A DNA stretch of 64,000 nt, from the IMG/VR virus record IMGVR_UViG_3300046660_000488, positions 124,001-188,000 of that record; one strand, written 5' to 3'. Made by a program: the position numbers and the translations under genes. The notes under the pieces were generated by a model. The model searched no databases and was not told the DNA's origin. It saw nothing but the letters and a program-made list of their open reading frames with translations. Shown here piece by piece: positions 8,627 to 61,976 of this stretch. The stretch's first letter is position 1; each line of letters begins with the position of its first letter.

Positions 8627-8663
8627 AGTCTTGTATTTCACAGTATAGATGTTTCGTTGTGTT

Positions 8664-8738
8664 GGTTCTGTAGCTCAGTGGGAGAGCGTCCGGTTGTCAG
8701 CCGGAAGGTCGCGGGTTCGAAACCCGTCAGGACCGCCA
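8664..8738 (+). tRNA. tRNA-Asp(GTC)
   Basis: Acceptor GGTTCTG/CAGGACC, loop TTGTCAG, G73, encoded CCA. Confidence 0.95.
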
Positions 8739-8753
8739 TCACCAAACATCTAT

Positions 8754-8828
8754 GCGGCTGTAGCTCAGGGGTAGAGTACTGCACTGTCGATGCAGTTGTC
8801 GCGGGTTCAAATCCCGTCAGTCGCGCCA
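8754..8828 (+). tRNA. tRNA-Asp(GTC)
   Basis: Acceptor GCGGCTG/CAGTCGC, loop CTGTCGA, G73, encoded CCA. Confidence 0.93.
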
Positions 8829-8833
8829 TTTCC

Positions 8834-8854
8834 GGACCTGCTAAATACAGGTTC
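8834..8854 (+). promoter_or_regulatory. TAAATA late promoter in the loop of a hairpin between tRNA-Asp and tRNA-Gly
   Basis: GGACCTG-c-TAAATA-CAGGTTC. Confidence 0.55.
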
Positions 8855-8857
8855 AAT

Positions 8858-8932
8858 GCGGGTATAGCACAGTGGTAGTGCGTCAGCTTGCCAAGCTGAA
8901 GGTCGTCGGTTCGAACCCGACTACCCGCTCCA
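8858..8932 (+). tRNA. tRNA-Gly(GCC)
   Basis: Acceptor GCGGGTA/TACCCGC, loop TTGCCAA, U73, encoded CCA. Confidence 0.95.
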
Positions 8933-8950
8933 GTTTTCGCACTTCAGTGC

Positions 8951-9024
8951 GCGGGTATAGCATAGTGGTAATGCAGCAGCCTTCCAAGCTGAGTAGCGGG
9001 GTTCGATTCCCCGTACCCGCTCCA
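8951..9024 (+). tRNA. tRNA-Gly(TCC)
   Basis: Acceptor GCGGGTA/TACCCGC, loop CTTCCAA, U73, encoded CCA. Confidence 0.95.
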
Positions 9025-13712: not shown

Positions 13713-13769
13713 TAAATATGGCTTTAAGCCATGAGCAATGGCTATAGTTAACTCATACTTTAGAGCCAT
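13713..13769 (+). promoter_or_regulatory. Late promoter followed by a leader with alternative hairpins
   Basis: TAAATA at 13713-13718; ATGGCT at 13718 and 13738; AGCCAT at 13727 and 13764. Confidence 0.6.
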
Positions 13770-13773
13770 TTTC

Positions 13774-14298
13774 ATGCGAGCCATTGAGATTTTCGAGCGT
13801 AGTAGCGCCACCAAAGGCGACTTCAAGACGCTGTATTGCAGCCGCAAGCTGCTGAACGGCAAAGAGATCGTCGAGTGGGCGAAGAGCCAAGGGCTCCCCA
13901 AGTGCTTGGACCCGGATAACATGCACGTCACCGTTGCTTACTCCAAGGAGAAAATCGACTGGTCTGAAATGACCGACAGTTTCGACAACGTCCGCAGCGA
14001 CGGCGGCAAACGCGAAATGGCGCTGTTCGGCCAGAACAAGGACGCGGTGGTCCTGAAATTCGAGTGCCCCGATCTGGACAGCCGCTGGCAGGAATTCAAG
14101 GACGATTTCGGCGCCTCGTGGGATTTCGACGGCTACAATCCCCACGTGACGATCTCCTATGACGGCCTGCCCAAGGGCATCGACATTGACGACATCGAGC
14201 CGTTCGAAGGCGTGCTGGAATTCGGTCCCGAGAAAATGGACATCGTCGATCTGAAGTGGCGCGGCAAGGTCAAGGAAACCAAGCTCGACACCGAATAA
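13774..14298 (+). CDS. acb1: 2H phosphodiesterase, T4 gp57B/Acb1-like anti-CBASS nuclease homolog
   Basis: Two HxT motifs (MHVTVAYS, PHVTISY). GASWDFDGYNPHVTISY resembles the recalled T4 57B segment GATHDFDDYTPHITLSY. Confidence 0.75.
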   Translation: MRAIEIFERSSATKGDFKTLYCSRKLLNGKEIVEWAKSQGLPKCLDPDNMHVTVAYSKEKIDWSEMTDSFDNVRSDGGKREMALFGQNKDAVVLKFECPDLDSRWQEFKDDFGASWDFDGYNPHVTISYDGLPKGIDIDDIEPFEGVLEFGPEKMDIVDLKWRGKVKETKLDTE

Positions 14299-16069: not shown

Positions 16070-18019
16070 ATGTCATTGTCACTATTCGATACTTTCAAGG
16101 AAAAGTACGCCAAGTCGAAGGTCGAGGTCATGCCGTTGGGCGACTACCTCGAACTCTGCAAGACTGAGCCGATGGCGTATGCCACCGCGCCCGAGCGTAT
16201 GATCGCCGCAATTGGCGAACCCCAACTGGTGGACACCGCGAGCGATCCGCGCCTGTCCCGCGTGTTCCTGAACCGCACCGTCAAGGTCTACCCGGCCTTC
16301 AAGGATTTCTACGGCACGGAAGCTGTCGTGGAACGGATCGTCTCGTACTTCCGGCAAGCGGCCCAAGGGCTGGAAGAGCGCAAGCAGGTTCTGTACCTTC
16401 TCGGCCCGGTCGGCGGCGGCAAGTCGTCCATCGCCGAGCGTCTGAAGCAACTGATGGAAGCCAACCCCATCTACGTGCTGGCTGTCGATGGTCCGGACGG
16501 CAAGCCGGAACTCAGCCCGGTGTTCGAGACCCCACTGGGCCTCTTCCCGGCCGAGCACTACGCCTCGACGATGGCCGAGCAATACGGCATCAACAAGCGC
16601 TACCTGAACACCATCATGAGCCCGTGGGCGTCCAAGCGCTTGCGTGAATTCGAAGGCGACATCACCCAGTTCAAGGTGGCCAAGGTCTGGCCGTCGCGTC
16701 TGGAACAAATCGCCATCTGCAAGACCGAACCCGGCGACGAGAACAACCAAGACATTTCCTGCCTCGTGGGCAAGACCGACATCCGCAAGCTGGAGTTCTT
16801 CAGCCAGAACGATCCGGACGCCTACGCCTTCTCCGGCGCTCTGAACCGGGGCAACCAAGGCATCATGGAATTCGTCGAAATGTTCAAGGCGCCGATCAAG
16901 GTGCTGCACCCGCTGCTGACGGCCACGCAAGAAGGCAACTACGTCGGCACGGAAGCGATCTCGGCGATCCCGTTCAACGGCACGATCCTCGCGCACTCCA
17001 ACGAGAGTGAGTGGCAGTCGTTCCGCAACAACAAGAACAACGAAGCCTTCCTCGACCGCATCTGCGTGATCAAGGTCCCCTACTGCCTGCGCGACACCGA
17101 AGAGAGCAACATCTACCAGAAGATGCTCAACGGCTCGACGCTGTCGGAAGCCCCGCTGGCTCCGGAAACCCTCTCGCTGCTGTCGCGCTTCAGCGTGCTC
17201 AGCCGCCTGAAGGACCACCCCAACTCGACCCTGTGGTCGAAGATGCGGGTCTATGACGGCGCCAACATGAAGGAGACCGATCCGCGCTCCAAGTCGGTGC
17301 AGGAATACCGCGACGACGCTGGCGTGGACGAAGGCATGAACGGTATCTCGACTCGCTTCGCGTTCAAGATTCTGTCGAACGCCTTCAACTACGACACCGA
17401 AGAAATCGGCGCCGACCCGGTCCTGCTGATGATGGTGCTGGAGGAAGCGATCCGCCGTGAACAATTCCCGGCCGAGATCGAGAAGAAATACCTCGGGTTC
17501 CTGAAGGACGATCTGGTTCGCTCCTACGCCGAATTCGTCGGTAGTGAAATCCAGACGGCCTACCTCGAAGCCTACGACGAGTACGGTCAGAACCTGTTCG
17601 ACCGCTACATCGAGTACGCCGACCACTGGCTGCAAGAGATCGACTACAAGGACCCCGACACCGGCAACCTGTTCAACCGTGCGGTCCTGAACAACGAACT
17701 CGAAAAGATCGAGAAGGCGGCGGGAATCGGCAACCCGAAGGACTTCCGCCACGAGACGGTCAATTTCGTCCTGCGTCAGCGGGCTCGTGGCAACTCGGTG
17801 ACGTGGACCAGCTACGAGAAACTGAAGCGGGTCATCGAGAAGAAGATGTTCTCGTCGGTCGAAGAGCTTCTTCCGGTCATCAGCTTCGGCTCGAAGCAGG
17901 ACAAGGACACGGAACGCAAGCACAAGGACTTCGTCGAGCGGATGGAGAAGAAGGGCTACACGGCCCGCCAGACCCGCCGCATCGTCGAGTGGTACATGCG
18001 GACCCGCAAGTCGGGCTAA
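16070..18019 (+). CDS. prkA: PrkA/YeaG family AAA+ ATPase / serine kinase
   Basis: Walker A GPVGGGKS; EPGDENNQDIS; EFVEMFKAPIKVLHPLLTATQEG; full length. Confidence 0.97.
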   Translation: MSLSLFDTFKEKYAKSKVEVMPLGDYLELCKTEPMAYATAPERMIAAIGEPQLVDTASDPRLSRVFLNRTVKVYPAFKDFYGTEAVVERIVSYFRQAAQGLEERKQVLYLLGPVGGGKSSIAERLKQLMEANPIYVLAVDGPDGKPELSPVFETPLGLFPAEHYASTMAEQYGINKRYLNTIMSPWASKRLREFEGDITQFKVAKVWPSRLEQIAICKTEPGDENNQDISCLVGKTDIRKLEFFSQNDPDAYAFSGALNRGNQGIMEFVEMFKAPIKVLHPLLTATQEGNYVGTEAISAIPFNGTILAHSNESEWQSFRNNKNNEAFLDRICVIKVPYCLRDTEESNIYQKMLNGSTLSEAPLAPETLSLLSRFSVLSRLKDHPNSTLWSKMRVYDGANMKETDPRSKSVQEYRDDAGVDEGMNGISTRFAFKILSNAFNYDTEEIGADPVLLMMVLEEAIRREQFPAEIEKKYLGFLKDDLVRSYAEFVGSEIQTAYLEAYDEYGQNLFDRYIEYADHWLQEIDYKDPDTGNLFNRAVLNNELEKIEKAAGIGNPKDFRHETVNFVLRQRARGNSVTWTSYEKLKRVIEKKMFSSVEELLPVISFGSKQDKDTERKHKDFVERMEKKGYTARQTRRIVEWYMRTRKSG

Positions 18020-18097
18020 GCACTGACGGAGAGGCGTCTATTTTGGCGCCTCTCCACCACCGCCACGATTGCTTTAGTACCATTTCTGAGTAGGCAT

Positions 18098-19432
18098 ATG
18101 ACTGGCTGCATCATTATCGACCGTCGCAAGAACCCCAAGGACAAGAGTCTGTCCAACCGCCAGCGGTTTTTCGAGCGGGCCAAGAAGGCTGTGCGCGAAG
18201 CCGCCAAGCGGACTCTGGCTGGCCGTTCGCTGTCGGACACGGGTGATGCGATCATCAATATCCCGACCGAAGGCTTGGGCGAGCCCCATTTCCATCACGA
18301 CAACAACGTCGGCGAATACGACATCGTCCTGCCCGGCAATCGGCAGTTCATCGTCGGCGACAAGATCAAGAAGCAACAGGACGGCGAAGGCGGCGGCCGT
18401 GGTAGCGGCGGCAATGGCGAAGGCGGTGAGGACGATTTCCAATTCGCCCTGACGCACGAAGAATTCCTCGACGTCATTTTCGACGATCTCGAACTGCCGG
18501 ACCTGATCAAGAAGACCGAACGCAACGCCGTGGCGTTCGCGCCCAAGCGCGCGGGTCACACCAACGTCGGCATGCCCTCCAACCTGAACGTCGAGAAGAC
18601 GGCTATCGCAGGCATCGCCCGACGCTTGGCTCTGCGGGCGCCCAAGAAGCGCCAAATCCGCGAGCTTGAGGACGAATATCGCGAAGTTCTGGCCAAGTTC
18701 CACGACGCTCAGGACTCCGGCCTCATCTACGCCCTGACCACGCGACTGAACGAGATCATCACCGAAGTCGTGGCGCTGGAACGCAAGATGGCGGCGGTCG
18801 GCTTCCTCGACGACGTGGACCTTCGCTACAACAACTTCGTCCAGCAGCCCAAGCCGATCACTCAGGCCGTGATGTTCTGCATCATGGACGTGTCGTTCTC
18901 GATGGGCGAGCGCGAGAAGATCATCGCCAAGAAATTCTTCATCCTGATGAACCTCTTCCTGAAGCGTCGGTACGAGAACATCGACGTGGTCTTCGTTCGC
19001 CACCACAGCGAAGCCATCGAATGCGACGAGGAAACGTTCTTCACGAGCCGTGAAGGCGGCGGAACGGTCGTGTCGTCCGGCTATCGCAAGATGATCGACA
19101 TCATGAAGGATCGCTACGCCTCGGATGACTGGAACATCTACATGGCCCAAGCATCGGATGGCGACAACTACGATGGCGACAACGGCGAGGTCACCCGCTA
19201 CCTGAGCGAGGAAATCCTGCCGGTGATCCAACACTTCACCTACATCGAAATCGTCGATGAGTGGCGTAAGCAATTCTTCGGCGACCCGTCCGGCGGCTAC
19301 AGGTCCAACCTGTGGCAAACCATCGACGCGATTGCCAGCCAGTTCGAAAACGTCTCGGCCGCCATGCTCGAAGACGAAAGCGAAGTGATCCGCGTGTTCC
19401 GCAACCTCTTCAAGTCAGAGAAATCCCAGTGA
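18098..19432 (+). CDS. yeaH: YeaH/YhbH family vWA-domain protein
   Basis: IIDRR.N...KS..NRQRF, VLPGN, MIDAS-like MDVSFSM, GGT, ASDGDN. Confidence 0.95.
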   Translation: MTGCIIIDRRKNPKDKSLSNRQRFFERAKKAVREAAKRTLAGRSLSDTGDAIINIPTEGLGEPHFHHDNNVGEYDIVLPGNRQFIVGDKIKKQQDGEGGGRGSGGNGEGGEDDFQFALTHEEFLDVIFDDLELPDLIKKTERNAVAFAPKRAGHTNVGMPSNLNVEKTAIAGIARRLALRAPKKRQIRELEDEYREVLAKFHDAQDSGLIYALTTRLNEIITEVVALERKMAAVGFLDDVDLRYNNFVQQPKPITQAVMFCIMDVSFSMGEREKIIAKKFFILMNLFLKRRYENIDVVFVRHHSEAIECDEETFFTSREGGGTVVSSGYRKMIDIMKDRYASDDWNIYMAQASDGDNYDGDNGEVTRYLSEEILPVIQHFTYIEIVDEWRKQFFGDPSGGYRSNLWQTIDAIASQFENVSAAMLEDESEVIRVFRNLFKSEKSQ

Positions 19433-20898
19433 CCACGCTTCCCCTCTGGACAGATTCTGAATGGTCGTTCGAGCGCATCCGTCGCGTCTATGACGAGTGC
19501 GAAAAGATCGGCATCGGTGAGCTTGGTCTGGACATCTACCAGAACCAGTTCGAGATCATTTCGTCCGAGCAGATGATCGACCGCTACACCAGCGTCGGCA
19601 TGCCGCTCTACTATAACCATTGGTCGTTCGGTAAGCAGTTCTCGCGCGAGTGGGACAGCTACAAGGCTGGCAAGTCGGGTCTCGCGTACGAGTTGGTCAT
19701 CAACAGCAACCCCTGCATCAATTACTTGATGGAGGACAACACGATGACGACCCAAGCTCTCGTCATCGCGCACGCTGCTTTCGGCCACAACCATTTCTTC
19801 AAGAACAACTACATGTTCAAGACGTGGACTGACGCCGACGCCATCGTCGATTACCTCGTGTTTGCCCGCGATTACGTGGCCGAGTGCGAAGATCGTCACG
19901 GCCGCCAAGCGGTAGAAACTTTCCTCGACAGTTGCCATGCTCTGCAAGAGTACGGCGTGAACCGCTACGTGCGGCCGTCCAAGCTGTCCCTGAAGGATGA
20001 GCGCAAGAAAGCCGCCGAGCGCGAGGCGTACCTGCAAACGCGGGTGGACGAACTGTACCGGATCATCCCCGACAAAACGGCCACCAAGGAGAAGGAAAAG
20101 TTCCCGAAGCAGCCGGAAGAGAACCTTCTGTATTTCTTCGAGAAGAATTCACCGAAGCTGGAGCCGTGGCAACGTGAGTTGATCCGCATCGTTCGCAAGA
20201 CTTCGCAGTATTTCTACCCGCAAGGTCAGACGAAAATCGCCAACGAAGGCTTCGCGACGTGGACACACTACACGATCATGAACCGTCTGCACGACAAGGG
20301 CCTGACGACTGACGGCGCGCACCTCGAATTCCTGAAGCTGCATGCTGGCGTCATCTTCCAGCCGGACTATGACGACAAGTATTTCTCTCTGCCGCTGAAC
20401 CCCTACAAGCTGGGTTTCGAAATCCTGCGGGACATCGAACGCATCTGCAAGGAGCCCACGGACGAGGATCGCCACTGGTTCCCCGACATCGTCGGCGAAG
20501 ACCCGGTCGAGGTGATCAAGGACGCCGTCGCCAATTACCGCGACGAAAGCCTGATCCGCCAGTTCCTGTCACCCAAGGTGATCCGCGATTTCCGGTTCTT
20601 CCAACTGAAGGACAACCGGGAATCTGACCACTATCTGGTCGAGACGATCCAGAACGAAAAGGGCGTGCTGGATATTCGCGACAAGCTGGCCCAGCAATCC
20701 GAACGCGACACGCGCCTGCCGAACATCGAGATCGAGGAATGCGATCTGGAGAACCGACGCCTGTACCTTCGCTACTCGCCCAACGGCACGAAGGAATTGA
20801 GCGACGCCACCGAAATGATGCGGCACGTCCGCCGCCTGTGGGGCTACAGCGTCTACCTCCGCGACACCAAGGGCAAGCTTCTGGGACTGGTTCAATGA
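19429..20898 (+). CDS. ycgB: SpoVR/YcgB family protein
   Basis: GMPLYYNHWSFGK, AYELVINSNPC, HAAFGHNHFFKNN, NEGFATWTH; GTG start overlapping the yeaH stop. Confidence 0.95.
   Translation: MTTLPLWTDSEWSFERIRRVYDECEKIGIGELGLDIYQNQFEIISSEQMIDRYTSVGMPLYYNHWSFGKQFSREWDSYKAGKSGLAYELVINSNPCINYLMEDNTMTTQALVIAHAAFGHNHFFKNNYMFKTWTDADAIVDYLVFARDYVAECEDRHGRQAVETFLDSCHALQEYGVNRYVRPSKLSLKDERKKAAEREAYLQTRVDELYRIIPDKTATKEKEKFPKQPEENLLYFFEKNSPKLEPWQRELIRIVRKTSQYFYPQGQTKIANEGFATWTHYTIMNRLHDKGLTTDGAHLEFLKLHAGVIFQPDYDDKYFSLPLNPYKLGFEILRDIERICKEPTDEDRHWFPDIVGEDPVEVIKDAVANYRDESLIRQFLSPKVIRDFRFFQLKDNRESDHYLVETIQNEKGVLDIRDKLAQQSERDTRLPNIEIEECDLENRRLYLRYSPNGTKELSDATEMMRHVRRLWGYSVYLRDTKGKLLGLVQ

Positions 20899-22603: not shown

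Positions 22604-22607
<4 letters not shown>
22179..22607 (+). CDS. Hypothetical coiled-coil protein
   Basis: Ala/Lys-rich helical sequence; coupled. Confidence 0.6.
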
Positions 22608-23955
<1,348 letters not shown>

Positions 23956-23971
<16 letters not shown>

Positions 23972-33474: not shown

Positions 33475-34686
33475 TTACTGGAATTCCGTGCCGCCCTTGC
33501 GGCCACCATAGTCTGGGCTCACCCACTTCACGATCTTGCGGCCGTGGCGGATGTGGCGGTTGTTACCGCCGTCGAGCCCGGTGATCACCACGCCCTCGCG
33601 GATGTGCTTGCCGCTGAAGCTGTCCTTGCCGTCGCGCACGGCGCGCAGGGCGTCCGCGTCGAACGGACCCTCGTAGAGCTTGGGAACGACGTCCATGCCC
33701 CATTGCTCGGCCAGCATGGCGACCGTCTCATAGGGAAGCCAGAGGCCGTTGGTCGTCTCACCGACGAACACGTCGAACAGGGCGATGCCGACGTCCTTCT
33801 TGTTGCGGCCGTACTTCAGGTCTTGGGCGCCGTAAATCTCGGCGAAGGCGCGCACCGGCAGGCCCGCGCAGATCGCCATGCTGAAGGCGGCGATGTTCGG
33901 CTCGAATTGCTTCAGGATGCTGTTCAGGGCGCGGGTGTAGACGTTGTCGTTCGGCTCGCCGTCGTCTTTCGTCTTCTTGAAACTCATGCCCTTCCCGGCC
34001 ATCAACTTCGACGAAATGTAGACGCTCTTGGTCACGCCGAAACAGTGCTCGTGGTTCAGGCCGGGCACGTAGCCGATCTGGACGTTGAAGCCGTGAATTT
34101 TCTCCGTGCCGATGACGGGCTCACCCGGCTCGAACATGTCGGTCTGGTCTTGGATACTGTCGAAATCGTAGCGCAGCGAAACGCCGAACGAGTTGAAGAC
34201 CGACCCTTGGTTCTCGGGTGGTATCTCCGGCTCGTACTTGGTGATGCCGAGCTTGGCGGCGACGTCCGTGCCCACGGTCACGTAGTAGCTGTGGCCTTCG
34301 CCTTCCAGCGGGAATTCGTACTCGGGGTTCCCCTCCAACTCCCAGAGCAACGTGGGGTCGGCGTCTTCCGGAATCGGGACCGGGATCAGCGGCAGGACGA
34401 TGCCTTGAGAGTAGATGCCGCGCAGCCGGAGGGGATGGACGCGATTGCCTTGCGGCCCGGCCAGCCTGCCCATGTTGGTTTCACGGTTCCAGAAATTGTG
34501 GCGGACCAGAATCCAGTCCGGAACGATGGCGCCTTCGGGGACGTAGATGATCGCGTCGCCGGGCTTGTACTGGTTGCGGCCGACCACGCATTCATAGCCG
34601 CCGACCTTGGCGACCGACAGGACGTCGCCGGTGGGGTGATCGTAGACTTCGTCGATCTTGCGGACTTTGACAGCGAAGGTGGACAT
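33475..34686 (-). CDS. RNA ligase, DRB0094/Rnl5-like, with an N-terminal OB-like domain
   Basis: Motif I TEKIHG, EIYG, FDV, EGVV, KWVS.DY. Confidence 0.88.
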   Translation of the reverse strand: MSTFAVKVRKIDEVYDHPTGDVLSVAKVGGYECVVGRNQYKPGDAIIYVPEGAIVPDWILVRHNFWNRETNMGRLAGPQGNRVHPLRLRGIYSQGIVLPLIPVPIPEDADPTLLWELEGNPEYEFPLEGEGHSYYVTVGTDVAAKLGITKYEPEIPPENQGSVFNSFGVSLRYDFDSIQDQTDMFEPGEPVIGTEKIHGFNVQIGYVPGLNHEHCFGVTKSVYISSKLMAGKGMSFKKTKDDGEPNDNVYTRALNSILKQFEPNIAAFSMAICAGLPVRAFAEIYGAQDLKYGRNKKDVGIALFDVFVGETTNGLWLPYETVAMLAEQWGMDVVPKLYEGPFDADALRAVRDGKDSFSGKHIREGVVITGLDGGNNRHIRHGRKIVKWVSPDYGGRKGGTEFQ

Positions 34687-35011: not shown

Positions 35012-35584
35012 CTACGCTTTCTTGAGTGCCGCCACGATCTTTGCGTGAACGTCTTTGATGGCGGCCATGCCATCGACCTTAATTTCTCGAACGCCAGTGT
35101 TGCCGTAGTAATCGAGTACCGGTGCGGTCTTCTCGAAATAGGTGGCCATGCGCTTGGCGAAGGTCTCGGGGTTGTCGTCGGCGCGACCGTCCGTCTTGAA
35201 ACGGTCGGTGATGCGCTGGAGCAGGACGTCCTGATCGACGCTCAATTCGACGACGGCGTCGATCTTGCAACCACCGCCGCAGGAAACGGTCAGCAGTTCG
35301 TCGAGCGCGAACGCTTGCGCGCAGTTGCGCGGGAATCCGTCGAAGATGATGTTCTTGCCATCATGGCGGATCAACTGTTCGTCGATCAGCTTCAGGACCA
35401 GTTCGTCCGAAGCAAAGATGCCGTTGTCGATCAGGCTCTTGATGTGTCGGCCGCGCTCGGAGTCTTCCGTTGCTGCGGCTCTGAGCATGTCACCCGTGGA
35501 GAGTTGAACCCAACCCTGCTCGACGAGTAACTTAGACTGCGTGCCTTTACCCGAACCGGGCGGGCCGAAGATTACGATTTGCAT
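35012..35584 (-). CDS. adk: Adenylate kinase (short, lidless type)
   Basis: GPPGSGKGTQ, STGDMLR, FDGFPR, GRADDN. Confidence 0.96.
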   Translation of the reverse strand: MQIVIFGPPGSGKGTQSKLLVEQGWVQLSTGDMLRAAATEDSERGRHIKSLIDNGIFASDELVLKLIDEQLIRHDGKNIIFDGFPRNCAQAFALDELLTVSCGGGCKIDAVVELSVDQDVLLQRITDRFKTDGRADDNPETFAKRMATYFEKTAPVLDYYGNTGVREIKVDGMAAIKDVHAKIVAALKKA

Positions 35585-39962: not shown

Positions 39963-41822
39963 ATGACCAAGCTCTCGTCGAAATATCGCTCTGTCACCTG
40001 CGGAGCCCTGACCAGCGCAAATGTGTCCGAGACACACACGCTGTCGGGCTGGGTGCACAACGTGCGAGATCACGGCGGTCTGGCCTTCATCGACCTGCGC
40101 GACAATTACGGTATCACGCAACTGGTGCTGAACCCGACCGAATTCCCCGAGATCGCCCACATCCGCAAGGAAAGCGTCATCCGGGTTATCGGTGAGGTCG
40201 TTCCGCGTCTGGCTGGCACGACGAACGCCAAGCTCTCCACCGGCGGGATCGAACTGAAGGTCGCGCACGCCATGGTGCTGTCGGAAGCCGTTGAGCTTCC
40301 CGTGCCCGTTTTCGGCGAGCCTGACTACCCCGAAGAGCTTCGCCTGAAGCATCGCTATCTCGACCTTCGCCGCGAAGGGCTGCACAAGCGCATCCAGCTT
40401 CGCTCGGACGTGGTCAACTTCCTGCGCGAGCGGATGCTGGGCGAAGGCTTCAAGGAATTCCACACGCCCATCCTGACGGCGTCGTCGCCGGAAGGTGCGC
40501 GCGATTTCCTCGTGCCCGCCCGCCTGCACCCCGGAAAATTCTACGCCCTGCCGCAAGCCCCTCAGCAATTCAAGCAATTGCTGATGGTCGCCGGGTTCGA
40601 CCGATATTTCCAGATCGCGCCGTGTTTCCGCGACGAAGCTGGCCGGGCCGACCGGTCGCCGGGCGAATTCTACCAACTCGACATCGAAATGAGCTTCGTC
40701 GATCAGGAAGACATCTTCCGGATGATCGAGCCGATCCTGTTCGACACGTTCGCCAAATTCCGACCGCAGCGAGACGTCTCGCCCGACAGCGGCTTCCTGC
40801 CCGGCACGGTTGCGGACAAGCTCAACATTTCGTCCTACCCGTTCAAGCGCATCCCCTATCGGGAGAGCATCCAGAAATACGGCACGGACAAGCCCGACCT
40901 GCGGAACCCGCTGGAAATGCAGGACGTGTCGAACGTGTTCAAGGGCGGCGGCTTCGGCATCTTCGCCTCAATCCTCGACGCCGATCCCGACAACCGCATC
41001 TGGGCGCTCCCCGCCTATGGCGGCGGCGCCAACTCGTTCACGCGAGGCATGGACTCGTGGGCCAAGGAACAGGGCCTGCCGGGCATGGCCTACATCGCGT
41101 GGAAACCCGAAAGCACCGACAACGATCTCGAAATCTCCTTCACCACCGCCACCGGCCCCGTCGCCAAGGCGCTAGGTAACGACGGCGCGGACAGGCTGCG
41201 CGACCGGTTCATGATGGCCGGAGGCGACGCCCTGTTTTTCTTCGCTGGCAAGCCGGACGATTTCTACAAGATCGCGGGCGCGGCGCGCACGAAGCTGGGC
41301 GAAGACCTCGGGCTGATCGACAAGAACCGGTTCGAATTCTGCTGGATCGTGGACTTCCCCATGTACGAGTTGAACGACGAGGGGAAGATCGACTTCAGCC
41401 ACAACCCGTTCTCGATGCCGCAAGGCGAAATGGATGCGCTGATCGGCCAAGACCCGCTCGACATCCTCGCCTACCAATACGACATCGTCGTCAACGGCAT
41501 CGAACTGTGCTCGGGCGGCATCCGGAACCACAAGCCGGAGATCATGCTGAAGGCCTTCGAGATCGCGGGCTACGGCCCGGAAGTCGTCGAAGAGAAATTC
41601 GGCGGGATGTTCAACGCCTTCAAGTACGGCGCTCCGCCGCACGGTGGCCTCGCACCCGGCATCGACCGCATGGTCATGCTGCTGGCTGGCGTGGACACCA
41701 TCCGCGACGTCATCGCTTTCCCGCTCAACCAGCAGGGCCAAGACCTGATGATGGGCGCGCCGTCCGAGATCACCGACAAGCAATGGAAAGAGTCCGGTAT
41801 CCGCCCGGCGCTGAAGGTCTGA
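39963..41822 (+). CDS. aspS: Aspartyl-tRNA synthetase, probably non-discriminating Asp/Asn type
   Basis: [34 protein letters not shown], motif 2 FRDE, motif 3 [14 protein letters not shown]. Confidence 0.97.
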
Positions 41823-50063: not shown

Positions 50064-50344
50064 TGGAATGTGACGTGGCATGGCACCCGCAAGGGGATCG
50101 CGACAGTCTTGGGGTTCAAGTCCCCTTCACGTCATGGGGCGACGGTCCCAGCATTTCAGCAAGGCCGGTCGGTTTGGATGATCGCAAAGTCCGGGCCGCC
50201 CGTGGACTCCCTTGTTGGTACGAAACAGGTGCGCTTGGCAGTGCATCGTTGATCAGGACAGCCATCCTGACATAGCGCGTACGAGCTTGGATCAGTTATG
50301 CGGGCACAGGCAGTGTAGGTGGCCGCTCTCTTCGGAGGGCGGCC
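50064..50344 (+). ncRNA. Candidate ncRNA of about 280 nt with a 5' tRNA-like domain
   Basis: Own promoter; acceptor-like stem 50072-78/50127-33; T-arm GGGG-TTCAAGT-CCCC; further hairpins; terminal 10-bp cUUCGg hairpin; no credible ORF. Confidence 0.65.
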
Positions 50345-50353
50345 ATCATCGTT

Positions 50354-50668
50354 TTAGAACAGGATCACCGGGACCGTGGCGATCCCCAGTTCCTTGGCCG
50401 CGTTCGCGCGGTGGCGACCATCTTCCTTGCCATTGGCGTAGATGATCAGCGGATCGAGCGTCCGCCCGCTCTGGATGTGGTTCTTCAGGTCGTCGATATT
50501 GTCGCGCGAGACGTCGTCGATTTCGAGCGGCCGAACCTTGCTGAGGTATTCGTCCGGGGTCATGGACACCATCCTCCCACCGTTCTGCTGATAGTTGGCC
50601 TCGCCGTACCACTCATCGCGAGGGGCCAGCGGATAGGAACGGGCTTCGGTCAATTCGTGAAAGCGCAT
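50354..50668 (-). CDS. Late ParB/Srx-like small protein, putative internal head protein
   Basis: TAAATA (50678-73)-N4-ATG; MRFHELTE leader; DPLII...EDGRHRA..A..LG...VPV. Confidence 0.7.
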   Translation of the reverse strand: MRFHELTEARSYPLAPRDEWYGEANYQQNGGRMVSMTPDEYLSKVRPLEIDDVSRDNIDDLKNHIQSGRTLDPLIIYANGKEDGRHRANAAKELGIATVPVILF

Positions 50669-50712
50669 GCGGTATTTATTGACGCCGATTGACTGGTAAA
50701 CTAAATTAACGT

Positions 50713-50871
50713 ATGGAAACTGCTCGGATCGATTGGAAGTGGGCGCGGCGAGAATTCGTCAACACGCTCCGTCTCTATTTTCTTCCGGTCACGTTCCTGT
50801 GGACCTTGATCACCAAGGGCCGCGAACCGGCCGTGGCACATGTCACGGCTATCCTTGAATCAAACCTCTAA
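50713..50871 (+). CDS. 52-aa small protein absent from the ORF track
   Basis: TTGACG-N17-TAAATT-N5-ATG; METARIDWKWARREFVNTLRLYFLPVTFLW. Confidence 0.55.
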   Translation: METARIDWKWARREFVNTLRLYFLPVTFLWTLITKGREPAVAHVTAILESNL

Positions 50872-50901
50872 TTATACGGGTGTAAAGCAAATGTTGGACG
50901 T

Positions 50902-52425
50902 ACGCAGCTAACGAAGACCTTCGACCATCGCTCCGAAGAGTCTTCCATCTATAACACATGGGAACAGGAAGGAGCTTTCGCGCCACGCGGAAATGGTCCT
51001 GCCTACTTCCTTCCGATGCCACCGCCGAACATCACCGGCATCCTGCACATGGGTCACGCCCTCTTCGCGACATTGCAGGACATTTCGACCCGATACCACC
51101 GGATGGCAGGCGATTGCACGCTCTGGCTCCCCGGCACGGATCACGCGGGTCTGGCGACGAACACCAAGATCACGGCGCTTATGCTGGAAGACGGGCTGAA
51201 CCCCGACGATCCGGAAGAATTCGACCTGTTCGCCGACATCTACAAGAAGAGCCTCCGCAACACGATCAGCGGCCAACTCCGTTCCTGCGGCGCCAGCGCC
51301 GACTGGAGCCGTGAGACGTTCACGCTGGACGAAGGGTACTCCCGCGCCGTTCTGACGGCCATGGAGCGCTGTGAGGCCGCTGGAATGCTCTATGGGCAGG
51401 ATGGGCAGTGGTGGCTCAACATGAAGCCTCTGGCTGACCGTCTGCTGGCCGAACTCGATGAAGGAAACATCGAGATCATCCCGGCCGGGCAGGAAGGCAC
51501 GCTCCGCAACTTCATCGAGAAAATCGAGCCGTGGTGCATCAGCCGCCAGATCAGGTGGGGCCACAAGCTCCCGATCTGGATCAGGGGCAATGCGCGCATG
51601 ATCTCGGCGGAATCGCCGGGCGGCGGCTGGAAGCAGGAAGACGGTTGCCTCGACACGTGGTTCTCGTCGGCCCTCTGGCCGTTCGCCACGCTGGGCTGGC
51701 CGGACGACACCGAGGACATGCGTCGGTTCTATCCGGCCGCGATGATCGAGACGGCTGACGACATCCTGTTCTTCTGGTGTGCTCGCATGCTGATGATGGG
51801 CCTTCTGCTCACCGATCAATTGCCGTTCAAGACGATCTTCCTGCACGGGCTGATCCGCGACAAGCACGGCAAGAAGATGAGCAAATCGGAAGGCAATGGC
51901 ATCGACCCGCTGGAGATCATCGACCGCTACGGCTGCGACAGCATGCGCTTTGCGCTGGCTGAATCCGCCACGCCCGGTCAGGACATGCGGATGTGGGACG
52001 ACAAATTCCAAGCCGGAAAGGCCCTGCGGACGAAGCTGTGGAACGCGGCGCGCTATGCGCTGAGCCACTACGACCGCATGGGACGGCCAGAGATCGAAGC
52101 TCTGGCCAACCTCAACCGCATGGACGACTTCCATTTCGTCAAGCGGACGCAGGAAGCCTCTGAGACCATCCAGATGGCCTACCGCGACCTTCGATACCAT
52201 GAGGCTGCACACGAGCTTCGTCGATACATTTTCGACGATCTGTGCGGCACGTTCATCGAAGCCACGAAGAGCCGTCTCTACGACGACAACGATCCGAAGG
52301 CCCTCAACACCTTGATGTGGGCTCTGGACATGACTTGCCGGATGGCTCACCCGATCATGCCGTTCGTCACCGAACGCATCCGGGCGACGTTCTCCGACAA
52401 GCCTTTGATTACTGACACTTTCTAA
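50902..52425 (+). CDS. valS: Minimal valyl-tRNA synthetase lacking the editing domain; start codon non-canonical or frameshifted
   Basis: KTFD..E..IY..WE..G.F, PPPNITG.LHMGHA, PGTDHAGLAT, WCISRQ..WGH, DTWFSSALWP, KMSKS.GN. Confidence 0.9.
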   Translation, partial: TQLTKTFDHRSEESSIYNTWEQEGAFAPRGNGPAYFLPMPPPNITGILHMGHALFATLQDISTRYHRMAGDCTLWLPGTDHAGLATNTKITALMLEDGLNPDDPEEFDLFADIYKKSLRNTISGQLRSCGASADWSRETFTLDEGYSRAVLTAMERCEAAGMLYGQDGQWWLNMKPLADRLLAELDEGNIEIIPAGQEGTLRNFIEKIEPWCISRQIRWGHKLPIWIRGNARMISAESPGGGWKQEDGCLDTWFSSALWPFATLGWPDDTEDMRRFYPAAMIETADDILFFWCARMLMMGLLLTDQLPFKTIFLHGLIRDKHGKKMSKSEGNGIDPLEIIDRYGCDSMRFALAESATPGQDMRMWDDKFQAGKALRTKLWNAARYALSHYDRMGRPEIEALANLNRMDDFHFVKRTQEASETIQMAYRDLRYHEAAHELRRYIFDDLCGTFIEATKSRLYDDNDPKALNTLMWALDMTCRMAHPIMPFVTERIRATFSDKPLITDTF

Positions 52426-52456
52426 ATACTTCGGGCCACGGTTTAGGTCGTGGCCC
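52423..52456 (+). promoter_or_regulatory. Late promoter overlapping the valS stop, followed by a GC hairpin
   Basis: TAAATA at 52423-28; GGGCCACG/CGTGGCCC at 52433-56. Confidence 0.55.
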
Positions 52457-52481
52457 ACCATACTCAAACCATTTGAAGTCC

Positions 52482-53354
52482 ATGACCGTATTCAACAAAG
52501 TTGCGACCGAAATATTCGGTGAGCTTCCTCCGCAAAAGATGCGTCAGGTTGCTTCAGAAATCGAGCAATACTATTTCAGCAAGTACAAAGGTCCAACTGA
52601 GGTCCCCACTCGTTTTAGGGATTTCTTGCCGTATTGCAAAATCCACGCGCAGCCGTCGTACAAGCTGGCCTCCATCAGGCCTCACCAGTATCAGAACGAC
52701 TTGGCGAATAATCTGTCAGGCGTGGCCAATGGTCACCACCATGTGCTGATCAATAGCTCGCGGCAGATGGGCACGACGACGATGCTCATGCTGTTCCAAC
52801 TGTGGTCCGCGCTTCGCACGCCGCTGTCGGACATCCATTTCGCGACGTGGAACCTGAACAGCGCCCACGAAGGCCTCGACCGCATTCGTACGGTTCTGCC
52901 GCACTTGCCGCTCACGTTCGGTGAGGTCGCCTCGATGACGAAATCGGAACTCAAGTTCACCAACGGCTCGCGAATTTCCGGCGCCGCGATAGGCTCGAAC
53001 CACATTGCCGGAAAGCGGTTCTCCACCATCGTCATCGACAACGCCTCGATGGTGGGAATTCACGCTTCTCGGAAGCAAACCCTCGACGACATTTTGCACC
53101 AAGCGGCCGTCTACAACACGCGGGTCGTCATCGCGTCTCAGCCCGGCTATGTCGGCGAGTTCTTCCACAAACTGTGGGCCGATCCGGAAACCGACATCGG
53201 CGGCAAGAGCCGGTTGCAATTTGCCAAGGTCGTCCTGAACTGGCGATCCAACCCGCTGCAAAATACGGGCTGGGCCGCAAGCCATCGGGCGAACCTGCCG
53301 ACGAGCCAGTACCGTCAGGAATTCGAGAACGAGTTCATCTACAAAACAGCTTGA
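52482..53354 (+). CDS. Degenerate large-terminase (gp17) ATPase-domain paralog
   Basis: YQ motif, SRQMGTTT, F.NGS.I, IVIDN, ASQP, YRQEFENEF; no nuclease domain. Confidence 0.75.
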   Translation: MTVFNKVATEIFGELPPQKMRQVASEIEQYYFSKYKGPTEVPTRFRDFLPYCKIHAQPSYKLASIRPHQYQNDLANNLSGVANGHHHVLINSSRQMGTTTMLMLFQLWSALRTPLSDIHFATWNLNSAHEGLDRIRTVLPHLPLTFGEVASMTKSELKFTNGSRISGAAIGSNHIAGKRFSTIVIDNASMVGIHASRKQTLDDILHQAAVYNTRVVIASQPGYVGEFFHKLWADPETDIGGKSRLQFAKVVLNWRSNPLQNTGWAASHRANLPTSQYRQEFENEFIYKTA

Positions 53355-56409: not shown

Positions 56410-56448
56410 TCTTATTGACGTTGGGATTTTCGTTTACTAAAAGTGGGC

Positions 56449-56946
56449 ATGGCTCGCGTAAACGAAAATCCCATCGTCCTGCCCCATTGGGCCGTCCTCG
56501 CCGCACCGGTGCTGGACATCTTCCTCTACACCATCGGCCGACCGCAGCGGATCGAAGTCCAGCAAAAGGGCGACGAACTCCGCATGTACTGCGTGGTGAG
56601 CAAGGAAGCTCTTACCAAAATGAACGGCAGTCGTGGGAAGTTTGGTTCGCAATGCGGCCATGCCTACCTGCATGCCTACTGGGACGCCGAGCGGCGTAAC
56701 CCGATCACTGCCCTGCGCTATCGCTACAGCGGCGCGGCGGCTAAGATCACGATGGTCGAAGAGACCACCGCTGGACTCATCGAGCTAAACCAACTCGCTG
56801 AAACTGATCCGGACTTGGGCGCCAGCCTGACAACGGACGCTGGCCGCACGACGTTCAAAGAGCCGACCGTCACGACACTTGGCCTTGGCCCAACCACCAA
56901 GGCCGATGCGGACTGGCTGCTCAACGGCAACTCGATGCTCACCTGA
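56449..56946 (+). CDS. pth2: Peptidyl-tRNA hydrolase, Pth2 family, with an N-terminal extension
   Basis: M..SRGKFGSQCGHA, KI, DAGRT...PTVT.LGLGP; leaderless promoter TTGACG-N17-TAAAAG-N5-ATG. Confidence 0.85.
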   Translation: MARVNENPIVLPHWAVLAAPVLDIFLYTIGRPQRIEVQQKGDELRMYCVVSKEALTKMNGSRGKFGSQCGHAYLHAYWDAERRNPITALRYRYSGAAAKITMVEETTAGLIELNQLAETDPDLGASLTTDAGRTTFKEPTVTTLGLGPTTKADADWLLNGNSMLT

Positions 56947-57300: not shown

Positions 57301-58761
57301 ATGACCAAAACCGTCGTCACACGCTTCGCCCCGTCGCCGACCGGCTACCTCCACATCGGAGGGGCACGCACGGCACTGTTCAACTACCTCTATGCCAAGC
57401 ATATGGGTGGCCAATTCGTGCTTCGGATCGAAGACACGGATCGCGAACGCTCGACGCCGGAATCCGTGCAGGCGATCTTCGACGGCCTGAAATGGCTGGG
57501 CATCCCGCACGACGGCGACGTCGTCTTCCAATCGGCGCGCGAGGCTCGCCACGTTGAGGCGGTGCAATACCTGCTCGACAAGGGCCGGGCCTATCGCTGC
57601 TACCTGACCAAGGACGAGCTTGAGGCCATGCGGGTCAAGGGCAAGGCCTTCCGCTCGCCGCACCGCGATGAGCCGGGCTGGGAGCCGCCGACCGATGACC
57701 GTCCGTTCGTTGTTCGTTTCAAGGGGCCGACCATCGGCCGCACGAACATCAACGACATGGTCAAGGGGAGCGAGGCCGCTGGCGTCTGGTTCGACAACTC
57801 GACGTTCGATGACCTGATCCTGCTGCGTTCAGACGGATCGCCGACCTACAACCTCGCGGTGGTGGTCGATGACCACGACATGGGTGTCACCCACGTGATC
57901 CGGGGCGACGACCATCTGAACAACGCTGGCCGTCAGACTCTGCTGTACGAAGCACTGGACTGGGAAATCCCGGTCTTCGGCCACGTGCCGCTGATCCTGA
58001 ACCCGGAAGGCAAGCCGCTGTCCAAGCGCAACGGCGACGCCGCCGTCTCCGACTATGCGGCTCTCGGCTACCTGCCGGAGGGCATGCGTAACTACCTCAC
58101 CCGTCTGGGCTGGGGTCACGGTGACGACGAAATCTTCTCGGACGCTCAGGCCATCGAGTGGTTCGACGTCGCCGATGTGGTGACTTCGCCCGCCCGCTTC
58201 GACTTCAAGAAGCTGGACGCAGTGAACCAACACTACATCAACGCGATGGATGACGTCACCCTGTCCAACATGGTGATCGACATCCTGAATTCGCGTCGCG
58301 ACGAGCCGTTGAACACCACCGCCGCCCATGCCGTGATGCGCGTTGTGCCCCTCATCAAGATGGGCACGCCGACCGTGGTGGCTCTGGCCAACGCGGCGGA
58401 TTTCGCGACGGTCCTCGACCAACCCCTGACCGACAAGGTCGCGGCGATGTTGGAGGACGACGTGGTCAAGCATCGCCTGTCGGTGCTGACCTCGGAGATC
58501 ATGCTGGCGCCGTGGAACGTTGATTCTCTGAACGAAGCCATCCGTGGCTACGTTCACGTCAACGATCTGAAGATGAAGGATGTCGGCCCGCTGCTGCGCG
58601 GTGTGCTGACCGGCCTTGATCGGGCACCGGACCTTGGCATCTGCCTTGTGGCCATCGGCCGTGAGCGTTCGCTGGCCCGTCTCAACGACGTGGTCAACCG
58701 CCTCACGTTCCCGCCGGTCAACAAGATGGATTCGCATCCAGCGGTTGACGGCCAAAACTAA
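57301..58761 (+). CDS. gltX: Glutamyl-tRNA synthetase
   Basis: VVTRFAPSPTGYLHIGGARTAL, LRIEDTD, PTYNLAVVVDD, VIRGDDH, LSKR; leaderless promoter TTGATT-N17-TAGGTT-N6-ATG. Confidence 0.97.
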   Translation: MTKTVVTRFAPSPTGYLHIGGARTALFNYLYAKHMGGQFVLRIEDTDRERSTPESVQAIFDGLKWLGIPHDGDVVFQSAREARHVEAVQYLLDKGRAYRCYLTKDELEAMRVKGKAFRSPHRDEPGWEPPTDDRPFVVRFKGPTIGRTNINDMVKGSEAAGVWFDNSTFDDLILLRSDGSPTYNLAVVVDDHDMGVTHVIRGDDHLNNAGRQTLLYEALDWEIPVFGHVPLILNPEGKPLSKRNGDAAVSDYAALGYLPEGMRNYLTRLGWGHGDDEIFSDAQAIEWFDVADVVTSPARFDFKKLDAVNQHYINAMDDVTLSNMVIDILNSRRDEPLNTTAAHAVMRVVPLIKMGTPTVVALANAADFATVLDQPLTDKVAAMLEDDVVKHRLSVLTSEIMLAPWNVDSLNEAIRGYVHVNDLKMKDVGPLLRGVLTGLDRAPDLGICLVAIGRERSLARLNDVVNRLTFPPVNKMDSHPAVDGQN

Positions 58762-61259: not shown

Positions 61260-61976
61260 ATGACCAACATCGTCATTCTAACCGGAGCGGGCATTAGCGC
61301 CGAATCCGGCATCCAAACGTTCCGCGACAGCAATGGCCTGTGGAACAATCACCGCGTCGAGGACGTCGCCACGCCGGAGGGTTTCAAGAACAACCCGCGC
61401 CTCGTGAACGATTTCTACAACGTCCGCCGGGCGGAACTTAAGACGGTCGAGCCCAACGACGGTCACCGGGCGCTGGCGAAGCTGGAAGAGGCGTGGAAGG
61501 ACATCGGCGGCTTCCTGCTGATCACCCAGAACGTGGATGACCTGCACGAGCGCGCCGGATCGAAGAACATCGCTCACATGCACGGCGAGCTTCGCGGCAT
61601 CCGTTGCACCGGCGAGGACTGCCGCAACCACGGCTACACCGACGACAACATCGGCATCGACACCCTGTGCGAAGACTGCGGCTCACCCATGCGGCCCGAC
61701 GTCGTCTGGTTTGGCGAGTTCCCCAAGTACCTGTCCCAGATCGACCGGGTGCTCGACAACACCGACATCCTGATCGTGATCGGAACGTCCGGGCAGGTCA
61801 TGCCCGCCAGCCTGTTCCCGACCGCAGTGCGACACATGAACCCCAAGGCCAACATCATCGAGGTCAACCCCGACCCGACGCGGGCGGCGGCGTTCAACTA
61901 CATCGTGGAAGGCGCTGCGGCGGTGGTTCTACCCGTGCTGGTGGACAACCTAATCGAACAGTGCAAGCCACGCTAA
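61260..61976 (+). CDS. cobB: Sirtuin, CobB/Sir2 NAD-dependent deacylase
   Basis: GAGISAESGIQTFR, TQNVDDLHERAG, HMHG, Zn-binding Cys residues, RPDVVWFGE, IGTSG.V.PA. Confidence 0.95.
   Translation: MTNIVILTGAGISAESGIQTFRDSNGLWNNHRVEDVATPEGFKNNPRLVNDFYNVRRAELKTVEPNDGHRALAKLEEAWKDIGGFLLITQNVDDLHERAGSKNIAHMHGELRGIRCTGEDCRNHGYTDDNIGIDTLCEDCGSPMRPDVVWFGEFPKYLSQIDRVLDNTDILIVIGTSGQVMPASLFPTAVRHMNPKANIIEVNPDPTRAAAFNYIVEGAAAVVLPVLVDNLIEQCKPR

Follow-up and report, generated by a model that had tools for sequence, protein, structure and literature searches.

Analysis of a 64-kb stretch (hereafter the window; IMG/VR record IMGVR_UViG_3300046660_000488) of a 578-kb phage genome confirmed a half-size valyl-tRNA synthetase (ValRS) homologue of about 510 aa, which keeps the catalytic and anticodon-reading core but has lost its CP1 proofreading domain and its C-terminal coiled coil. 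The gene has no normal start codon and appears to be entered by a frameshift from a tiny leader gene that contains one rare valine codon. The original prediction, that a ValRS of about 505 aa lacks CP1 and the coiled coil while HMGH and KMSKS are intact, held up as an observation. Its interpretation, an editing-free synthetase that tolerates or causes Thr-for-Val mistranslation, relies on trans-editing or has a non-translational role, was only partly supported: the structural claim is stronger than proposed, but the functional consequences remain inferences, the predicted start at 50902 is wrong, and the unusual way the gene appears to be expressed was missed.

Architecture and predicted structure of the compact ValRS

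Translation of positions 50842-52430 (+ strand) showed one open frame from 50872 to the stop at 52423-52425, in which CEAAGMLY runs through GQDG directly into QWWLNM, followed by WCISRQ, and which ends 21 residues after HPIMPFVTE. The frame encodes MPPPNITGILHMGH (51016-51057), which comprises the Val-pocket prolines and Asn plus the HIGH motif (HMGH, 51046-51057), as well as GTDHAG (51133-51150), DTWFSS (51652-51669) and the KMSKS loop (51874-51888). Against Thermus thermophilus ValRS (1GAX, 862 aa), the protein matched only residues 3 to about 165 and about 352 to 695, ending at the position of 1GAX residue ~700. In comparison with 50 full-length ValRS, about 186 residues, the whole CP1 domain with both zinc knuckles, are missing between Y167 and Q172, and about 170 residues, the stem-contact domain and coiled coil, are missing after the C-terminus. 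The site of the CP1 deletion is marked by a YGQDG turn (51391-51405) that joins the two beta-strands (166-169 and 172-175 of the model) which in full-length ValRS lead into and out of CP1. Pfam searches found tRNA-synt_1 (5.9e-92) and a truncated Anticodon_1 (3.3e-18; profile positions 3-95 of 148) at 52132-52398, where the anticodon-binding helical bundle lies and after which the protein ends 9 residues later, but no Val_tRNA-synt_C. The NCBIfam valS models NF004349 and TIGR00422 scored 533.3 and 488.1 bits, below their curated cut-offs of 704 and 612.1.

The AlphaFold2 model (pLDDT 93.4, pTM 0.92) had 1GAX as its best Foldseek hit, with a TM-score of 0.92 over the query, and its helices 369-498 superpose on the anticodon bundle of that structure. 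The fourth hit was the LeuRS of Mycoplasma mobile (3ZIU; PMC3643597), a class Ia enzyme that naturally lacks CP1 while keeping the synthetic core; it differs in amino-acid specificity and is the sole LeuRS of a reduced cellular genome, whereas the phage ValRS is an accessory copy acting beside the host's editing-proficient enzyme and additionally lacks its C-terminal tRNA-binding module. Methionyl-tRNA synthetase, which is similar in size and domain order (a Rossmann fold with a short connective peptide, then a helical anticodon bundle), was also a high hit, with TM-scores of about 0.75-0.80 in both directions, but sequence identity is only about 20%, the pocket residues are those of ValRS, and the NCBIfam valS scores far exceed metG.

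A ValRS family of huge phages, under purifying selection

The gene is not broken. It belongs to a deep family of more than 100 protein clusters of 410-580 aa, many on phage contigs of 240-650 kb, and the cultured jumbo phages RAS14 and CM1 carry the same junction at 32% identity. In the phylogeny all full-length ValRS lie behind one branch (SH-aLRT 100). A megablast of positions 48-56 kb against 50,697 phage records found no match, indicating that the phage has no close cultured relative. Among genome representatives only one compact copy was found, on a 581-kb contig of a Sphingomonas isolate assembly, and a scan of metagenome contigs with the family alignment, in which one search pattern was generic, returned almost only ordinary bacterial ValRS and a single compact locus. 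The dN/dS ratio of the whole gene is 0.12-0.18. Sixty-seven positions are at least 90% conserved and identical in 119 compact and 86 full-length ValRS, including P43-P45, N46, H52, G54, H55, D83, W256, I291, W295, S330 and K331, which map to T. thermophilus P41-N44, H50, H53, D81, W456, I491, W495 and KMSKS. The residues that line the valine/adenylate pocket (T. thermophilus P41, P42, N44, D81, W456, I491 and W495) are all aligned and identical in the phage protein.

A search for a separate CP1 gene, which had been named beforehand as a check, was negative. Profile HMMs of the missing CP1 and C-terminal segments found nothing in the six-frame ORFs of the window or in the flanks of the compact loci searched (E>0.7), and a motif scan of IMG/VR found ValRS-type CP1 on 17 viral contigs, none of which carries a compact ValRS. 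No conserved partner gene sits next to the compact ValRS. The window also encodes CysRS, AspRS and GluRS, which are full size and have ordinary starts, together with eight tRNAs, a PTH2 peptidyl-tRNA hydrolase and an RNA ligase.

We therefore favor, with moderate confidence, the explanation that this is a minimal ValRS belonging to a family specific to huge (about 0.25-0.65 Mb) phages, which most likely charges tRNA-Val with valine during infection as one part of the phage's own translation-support set, and which would do so without any cis hydrolysis of Thr-tRNA-Val. In this view the enzyme keeps the Rossmann fold with every residue lining the Val-AMP pocket, the KMSKS loop and the helical bundle that reads A35/C36, while CP1 was excised cleanly and replaced by a four-residue beta-turn. 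The domain architecture, the conserved residues, purifying selection, the phage-restricted distribution and the absence of a CP1 homologue nearby are demonstrated by our analysis, as is the sequence pattern of the leader described below; catalytic activity, including valylation of tRNA-Val, lower fidelity, tolerance of that lower fidelity during a short infection, and the mechanism of expression are inferred from these data. Charging could be weakened by loss of the coiled coil, which in the T. thermophilus ValRS-tRNA complex contacts the tRNA elbow and G20. G20 and G45 are minor identity elements (PMC9976931).

It is also possible, but on present evidence unlikely, that the protein is active while fidelity is preserved by other means, through trans-editing of released Thr-tRNA-Val by the host's full-length ValRS or an unrecognized phage factor, or through a synthetic site that rejects Thr better than ordinary ValRS. 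The host ValRS is present during infection, and family-specific substitutions lie next to catalytic motifs: F58 follows HMGH, where full-length enzymes have a polar residue, E286 and C296 flank the D290/I291/W295 pocket strand, and L87 and F207 also differ. The PTH2-type hydrolase lies 4 kb downstream and is syntenic at one related locus (L003), but PTH2 is not known to edit aminoacyl-tRNA. The pocket residues themselves are unchanged, and no CP1, YbaK, AlaX or DTD-type domain was found among about 50 window ORFs scanned.

A non-canonical role, for example as a tRNA-Val or mRNA binding regulator, as a producer of Ap4A or aminoacyl-adenylate, or as an enzyme that valylates something other than tRNA, seems less probable still. 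Trimmed aaRS paralogues with new roles, such as YadB/Glu-Q-RS, provide precedents (PMC9437257), two tRNA-contacting modules have been lost, and no phage tRNA-Val was found beside any compact ValRS or in the window, which covers only 64 kb of the 578 kb. However, the anticodon-binding bundle and its conserved residues (E456, K459, H486, P487 and P490) are retained together with every adenylate-site and KMSKS residue, a pattern that favors a working aminoacylation enzyme, and the leader codons described below fit a link to tRNA charging.

A leader ORF and a proposed frameshift

The predicted start at 50902 is ACG, which is not a start codon. Homology to ValRS N-termini begins at GTT 50893, giving 510 codons, and there is no in-frame ATG, GTG or TTG between the upstream stop (50869-50871) and ATG 51016, from which gene callers report a protein of 469 aa. 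The 42 codons upstream of 51016 are under purifying selection (dN/dS 0.11-0.25), even between pairs that both lack a start codon, and so they are translated. Decay of an ancestral GTG start to GTT, with either no product or only a truncated product from 51016, is very unlikely: although four close relatives (L004, L005, L014 and L015) have GTG at this position, GTT occurs in 13 of 19 widely divergent loci, and a start at 51016 would delete the first Rossmann strand.

In all 19 compact-ValRS loci examined, a leader ORF of 6-10 codons, led by a Shine-Dalgarno sequence and in the +1 frame relative to ValRS, overlaps the true N-terminus and follows the pattern M(xx)x[D/E/N]V(x0-4)-stop. In the window this leader is ATG TTG GAC GTA CGC AGC TAA (50891-50911; MLDVRS), preceded by a Shine-Dalgarno-like GGGTG (50878-50882) 8 nt upstream of its ATG, where relatives have GGAG or GGAGG at the same spacing. 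The Val codon adjoins a -1 slip context that co-varies without exception, being G-GAC or G-GAA in 15 loci and A-AAC in 4. The site is built from rare codons (GTA 1.7%, CTA 1.8%, GGA 7.8%, CGT 13.8%), GTA being the rarest Val codon of this genome, at 1.7% of Val codons. Three phage IleRS genes carry the same leader with ATT (Ile) at the sensor position (MTALEIRR, MTTLEIRR and MTTLEITSRG); a scan of viral contigs with one IleRS (locus L111) found no relative, and relatives were obtained instead from the protein database. The CysRS, AspRS and GluRS genes of the window have no similar leader. A scan of viral contigs for the leader motif without the slip site gave mostly chance RBS matches, whereas a stricter pattern returned only ValRS leaders plus one unexplained locus.

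We propose that ribosomes start at ATG 50891 and enter the ValRS frame by a -1 slip of peptidyl-tRNA-Asp at G-GAC-GTA (50896-50902), where the P-site GAC can re-pair on GGA when the A-site GUA is slow to be read, after which the A site would read CGT of the ValRS frame. ValRS would then be made when Val-tRNA-Val is short. The shift is inferred from sequence alone. There is no classical X XXY YYZ heptamer, only single P-site re-pairing being possible; the Shine-Dalgarno sequence lies 14 nt (type i leaders) or 20 nt (type ii) 5' of the P-site codon, and the window has a hairpin at 50913-50947, but no family-wide downstream structure was supported by consensus folding. A frameshift at the leader's stop codon, RF2-like +1 or -1, was rejected, as a +1 shift leads to the wrong frame and the codons before the stop (AGC, AAC, CGC, ATC, GTC) cannot re-pair at -1, and near-cognate starts (ACG 50902, AAG, CTG) were rejected because none is conserved across loci.

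Other routes into the ValRS frame are doubtful but have some support. These are non-AUG initiation on a main-frame cognate codon (GUU, GUG or GUC; AUU in IleRS), a 7-nt backward hop of peptidyl-tRNA from the leader's Val or Ile codon to the matching main-frame codon, and termination-reinitiation after the leader. A second cognate codon just 5' of GGA/AAA in the main frame is conserved in all 19 ValRS loci (GTN) and all three IleRS loci (ATT), which the simple slip model does not explain, although that base is the wobble position of a variable leader codon; at locus L275 the leader residue changes from Leu to Ser while the main-frame Val is kept. Four loci have an in-frame GTG that could serve as a start, and in RAS14 an in-frame ATG overlaps the leader stop, which would fit reinitiation. 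Yet GUU and GUC are double mismatches to the initiator anticodon and in type ii leaders lie 16 nt from the Shine-Dalgarno sequence, hopping would need charged Val-tRNA, so that it would not sense shortage, and does not explain the N-NAx context, and most loci offer no start codon for reinitiation.

Implications for translational control and fidelity

The proposed arrangement resembles the autoregulatory frameshift of prfB (RF2), in which a slow-to-decode codon in a short ORF1 reports the activity of the gene's own product and ribosomes that shift make the functional protein (PMC5009743), and the use of cognate codons in a leader recalls attenuation and the T-box specifier. It differs from RF2 in that the direction is -1, not +1, and the sensor is a sense codon, GTA in ValRS leaders and ATT in IleRS leaders, not a stop. 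No T-box or terminator/antiterminator structure is present: Rfam gave no match at E<=1 in 50300-51200, and no consensus fold was found. The Atkins 2016 review states that no natural example of hungry-codon frameshifting producing a functional trans-frame protein is known. It is possible, though we offer this only tentatively, that huge phages control their ValRS and IleRS genes in this way, with the stalled ribosome slipping -1 on N-NAx and translating the synthetase only when Val-tRNA-Val or Ile-tRNA-Ile is scarce. This would be the first natural case of its kind, a sense-codon counterpart of RF2 autoregulation controlling an enzyme that has itself dispensed with proofreading. If confirmed, it would add a new class of translational feedback on tRNA charging, and would explain why most of these genes are mis-annotated with truncated N-termini in public databases, 90 of 118 family clusters having been called from an internal Met.

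Editing by CP1 is treated as a near-universal safeguard of ValRS against misincorporation of Thr and alpha-aminobutyrate. The compact enzymes (about 430-520 aa) could be useful scaffolds for engineering, and as a large family, maintained by natural selection, that has removed this safeguard, they give a ready-made system for asking how much fidelity a replicating entity really needs, whether host editing covers for the phage, and what the minimal tRNA-Val recognition apparatus is.

Architecture of the compact ValRS and its family

The plus-strand frame is open from 50872 to a TAA stop at 52423-52425, and its translation contains PMPPPNITGILHMGH, GTDHAG, DTWFSS, DILFFW and KMSKS. The sequence runs from CEAAGMLY through GQDG directly into QWWLNM and ends 21 residues after HPIMPFVTE. 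Pfam identified tRNA-synt_1 (5.9e-92) and a partial Anticodon_1 domain (profile positions 3-95 of 148), and the NCBIfam valS models were by far the best hits, although they matched in two stretches and stayed below their curated cut-offs (533 against 704 bits and 488 against 612). Among solved structures the best match was T. thermophilus ValRS (1GAX), of which the query covers residues 3 to about 165 and about 352 to 695 of 862. A MAFFT alignment with 50 full-length ValRS placed one gap of about 186 residues between Y167 and Q172, which is the whole CP1, including the CxxC knuckles on both sides, and a second gap of about 170 residues after the C-terminus. The original prediction of a half-size ValRS lacking CP1 and the C-terminal coiled coil is thus confirmed as an observation, including its reading of the junction, and only its start coordinate, an ACG codon at 50902, is arbitrary.

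The window comes from a 578,292-bp viral contig (IMGVR_UViG_3300046660_000488), but the gene it encodes is not an isolated case. The protein database holds more than 100 clusters, at the 90% identity level, of 410-580-aa ValRS homologues with the same architecture, many of them on contigs of 240-650 kb, and full-length ValRS appear only from about 41% identity downward. The cultured Stenotrophomonas jumbo phages RAS14 and CM1 (319 kb) encode a 449-aa "valyl-tRNA synthetase" with the same junction (AGKIY-KKDG-SYFLTL) and the same C-terminal end, at 32% identity. In a phylogeny of 49 compact and 43 full-length sequences, all full-length ValRS sit behind one branch (SH-aLRT 100, length 0.58), the single exception among the compact rows being a contig-end fragment; since the tree is unrooted, one origin of the compact form is consistent with it but not proven. 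Among 185,579 species-representative genomes, 23 loci encode the exact PMPPPNITG motif, of which nineteen are ordinary bacterial ValRS with normal starts and three are chance matches with no long ORF. Only one is compact, and it lies on a 581,572-bp contig of the Sphingomonas sp. 3-13AW assembly (NZ_JASNVZ010000001.1; locus L269), which is about the size of the window's phage genome and is probably a huge phage or phage-plasmid carried by the isolate. This points to a phage-borne family and hints at alphaproteobacterial hosts.

Pairwise dN/dS between the window gene and seven relatives was 0.12-0.18, and a joint alignment of 119 compact and 86 full-length sequences contained 67 positions that are at least 90% conserved and identical in both groups. 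These include the Val pocket and adenylate site (P43-P45, N46, H52, G54, H55, D83, W256, I291, W295, S330 and K331) and residues of the anticodon domain (E456, K459, H486, P487 and P490); only four positions are conserved differently in the two groups. An AlphaFold2 model built on 29 family members is confident (pLDDT 93.4, pTM 0.92) and shows two short antiparallel strands (166-169 and 172-175) joined by the GQDG turn where CP1 would emerge. The top Foldseek hit to this model was 1GAX (TM 0.92 normalised to the query, 0.55 to the target), and high hits also included the naturally CP1-less M. mobile LeuRS (3ZIU) and several MetRS (TM 0.75-0.80).

Search for a separate editing domain, and genomic context

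The original prediction named a separate CP1 gene as something to look for, and none was found in the sequences searched. HMMs built from the missing CP1 and C-terminal segments of full-length ValRS returned nothing (best E 0.79) in the six-frame ORFs of the window or of the flanks of the compact loci searched. A scan of IMG/VR with a CP1 alignment (motifs [VL]K[VI]TP[AG]HD and EPx[LVI][ST]xQW[FY]) found 17 viral loci, none on the window's contig or on any contig that carries a compact ValRS, although this contig-wide test depends on motifs and the ORF searches covered only 64 kb of the 578-kb contig. Some very large viral contigs carry ValRS with CP1 retained, including IMG/VR contigs of 0.71-1.15 Mb (loci L239, L243 and L244) and the GVMAG loci L240, L241 and L245, indicating that loss of CP1 is not a general property of virus-encoded ValRS. 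No neighbour gene is conserved across divergent compact loci. In the window the immediate neighbours of ValRS are a 293-aa protein (52473-53354) with a weak match to the terminase large-subunit ATPase region (phrog_2, 8.8e-11) and a 104-aa ParB-like fragment (50354-50668, minus strand) with a DGRHR motif (phrog_26377, 2.3e-5). About 50 window ORFs scanned with Pfam contain no YbaK, AlaX or DTD-type editing domain, and the only tRNA esterase among them is an archaeal/eukaryotic-type PTH2 peptidyl-tRNA hydrolase (56443-56946; 3.9e-14). This gene lies between ValRS and GluRS and is syntenic in another compact-ValRS locus (L003); it is possible, though speculative, that it recycles peptidyl-tRNA dropped from short leader ORFs.

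The window is a translation-rich part of a huge phage. A cluster of eight tRNA genes at 8217-9024 (Gly-GCC x2, Gly-UCC, Glu-UUC x2, Glu-CUC and Asp-GUC x2) matches the phage's own GluRS and AspRS, while no tRNA-Val is in the window. CysRS (22604-23971), a bacterial-type AspRS (39963-41822) and GluRS (57301-58761) have lengths typical of bacterial enzymes and ordinary ATG starts, with no leader ORF, indicating that the trimming is specific to ValRS. In another phage (loci L110/L111) the compact ValRS is followed by an IleRS that still matches the ileS model in one stretch through CP1. The window also encodes anti-CBASS Acb1 (13738-14298; 8.7e-37), an RNA ligase with a PHA02142 OB fold (33475-34686, minus strand), adenylate kinase (35012-35584, minus strand), a Sir2-family protein (61260-61976), a T4 gp15-like tail protein, an endolysin-like gene, and a trio of PrkA serine kinase, DUF444 (YeaH-like) and SpoVR (YcgB-like) genes (16070-20898), which is a bacterial starvation or stress module.

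Predicted function

The intact synthetic site, the KMSKS loop and the anticodon bundle, together with strong purifying selection, argue for a working ValRS. The major valine identity elements (A35, C36 and A73) are read by parts that are kept, and G20 and G45 are minor identity elements (PMC9976931). In the T. thermophilus ValRS-tRNA complex, the coiled coil that is lost here contacts G20 and the tRNA elbow. Without CP1 there can be no cis post-transfer editing, and it follows from established ValRS enzymology that Thr-tRNA-Val would be released unless it is removed in trans; the phage might tolerate this, exploit it, or rely on the host enzyme. The original interpretation, an editing-free synthetase that tolerates or causes Thr-for-Val mistranslation, relies on trans-editing or has a non-translational role, is supported in part. 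Domain loss, residue conservation and purifying selection are read directly from the sequences, but valylation activity and reduced fidelity are inferred. We found no paper describing a CP1-less ValRS, and the huge-phage survey reports aaRS genes but not this architecture (PMC7162821).

Leader ORF and a proposed route into the ValRS frame

Beyond the original prediction, the compact genes present a start-codon problem. In the ValRS frame there is no ATG, GTG or TTG between the stop at 50869-50871 and the ATG at 51016, yet the 42 codons before 51016 align with ValRS N-termini (LTKTFDH..IY..WE..G.F) and have dN/dS of 0.11-0.25, even between pairs that both lack a start codon. The problem is general, as 90 of 118 family clusters were gene-called from an internal Met, 43 of them at PMPPPN and 34 at HMGH.

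All 19 compact loci inspected share a leader mini-ORF that overlaps the start of the ValRS gene (window 50878-50911; also L003-L005, L009, L010, L012-L015, L029, L109-L113, L269, L275, L276 and L001), and most of these genes have no canonical start codon in the ValRS frame. A Shine-Dalgarno sequence (GGAGG, or GGGTG in the window) lies 5-9 nt (8 nt in the window) upstream of an ATG in the +1 frame (50891 in the window), from which runs a 6-10-codon ORF of the form M(xx)x[D/E/N]V(x0-4)stop. Examples, each followed by a stop codon, are MLDVRS in the window, MTTLDVSN in L012, MTTLEV in L013, MSPLNV in RAS14 and MSPSNVRRCG in L275. The Val codon is GTA in 15 loci and GTC in 4, although GTA is only 1.7% of Val codons in this genome. 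The overlapping codons of the main frame are always GGA or AAA, then CGT or AGT, and in most loci CTA or CTG, a Leu codon that provides the leader's stop. These are rare codons (GGA 7.8%, CGT 13.8%, CTA 1.8%), which shows that the constraint comes from the leader frame. The codon before the Val codon is preceded by a base identical to its own first base, as G-GAC (14 loci), G-GAA (1) or A-AAC (4), and the G-to-A changes occur together, so that the P-site tRNA could re-pair one base back on GGA or AAA.

An independent test of this idea came from phage IleRS genes of an 845-851-aa clade. The IleRS next to the compact ValRS in L110/L111 (L111 7455-7500, and the same in L110) and two relatives at 76% and 57% identity (L271, about 1425-1455, and L272, about 1425-1460) have the same Shine-Dalgarno sequence, spacer and leader, but carry ATT (Ile) where the ValRS leaders have GTN (Val), giving MTALEIRR, MTTLEIRR and MTTLEITSRG before the stop. 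They also have a G-GAA context, an IleRS frame at -1, and no canonical start before the conserved IleRS N-terminus (K[DE]TLFLP[RE]T.VPM). More distant phage IleRS (L273 and L274) and bacterial ValRS have ordinary starts. The same Shine-Dalgarno-spacer-ATGAC leader also occurs with an Ala codon (MTMQEARS, then stop) at 164-203 of L174, a locus of a 455-kb viral contig (IMGVR_UViG_3300015214_000024), inside a cluster of 10 tRNA genes that includes three tRNA-Ala genes; the -1 frame ORF downstream is only 107 aa and has no recognised function. L273 has a similar leader without a Shine-Dalgarno sequence (MTYQEAKVALT, then stop) upstream of its IleRS.

The simplest model is that ribosomes start at the leader ATG and, if the cognate aminoacyl-tRNA is plentiful, read the sensor codon and terminate a few codons later. 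If it is scarce, the ribosome would pause and the peptidyl-tRNA would slip -1, the A site would then show an Arg (ValRS) or Asn (IleRS) codon, and the synthetase would be made. Such a mechanism, which is inferred from the sequence pattern, would mirror RF2 autoregulation, and the 2016 recoding review states that no natural example of hungry-codon frameshifting yielding a functional trans-frame protein is known (PMC5009743). Several features weigh against the model or are not explained by it. There is no X XXY YYZ heptamer, no conserved downstream structure and no Rfam element; four loci have an in-frame GTG, and RAS14 has an ATG overlapping the leader stop. A second cognate codon in the main frame, immediately 5' of the slip codon and 7 nt upstream of the leader's sensor codon (50893-50895 in the window), is conserved as GTT, GTG or GTC in all 19 ValRS loci and as ATT in all 3 IleRS loci. 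It overlaps a variable leader codon and is kept even when the overlapping leader residue changes, and it could mark an E-site effect, a backward hop between matching codons, or non-AUG initiation.

The compact enzyme is a natural, selected, phage-wide variant of ValRS without its proofreading and C-terminal tRNA-binding modules, and to judge from its sequence it is probably active and probably error-prone. The way the gene is entered is at least as interesting as its architecture.
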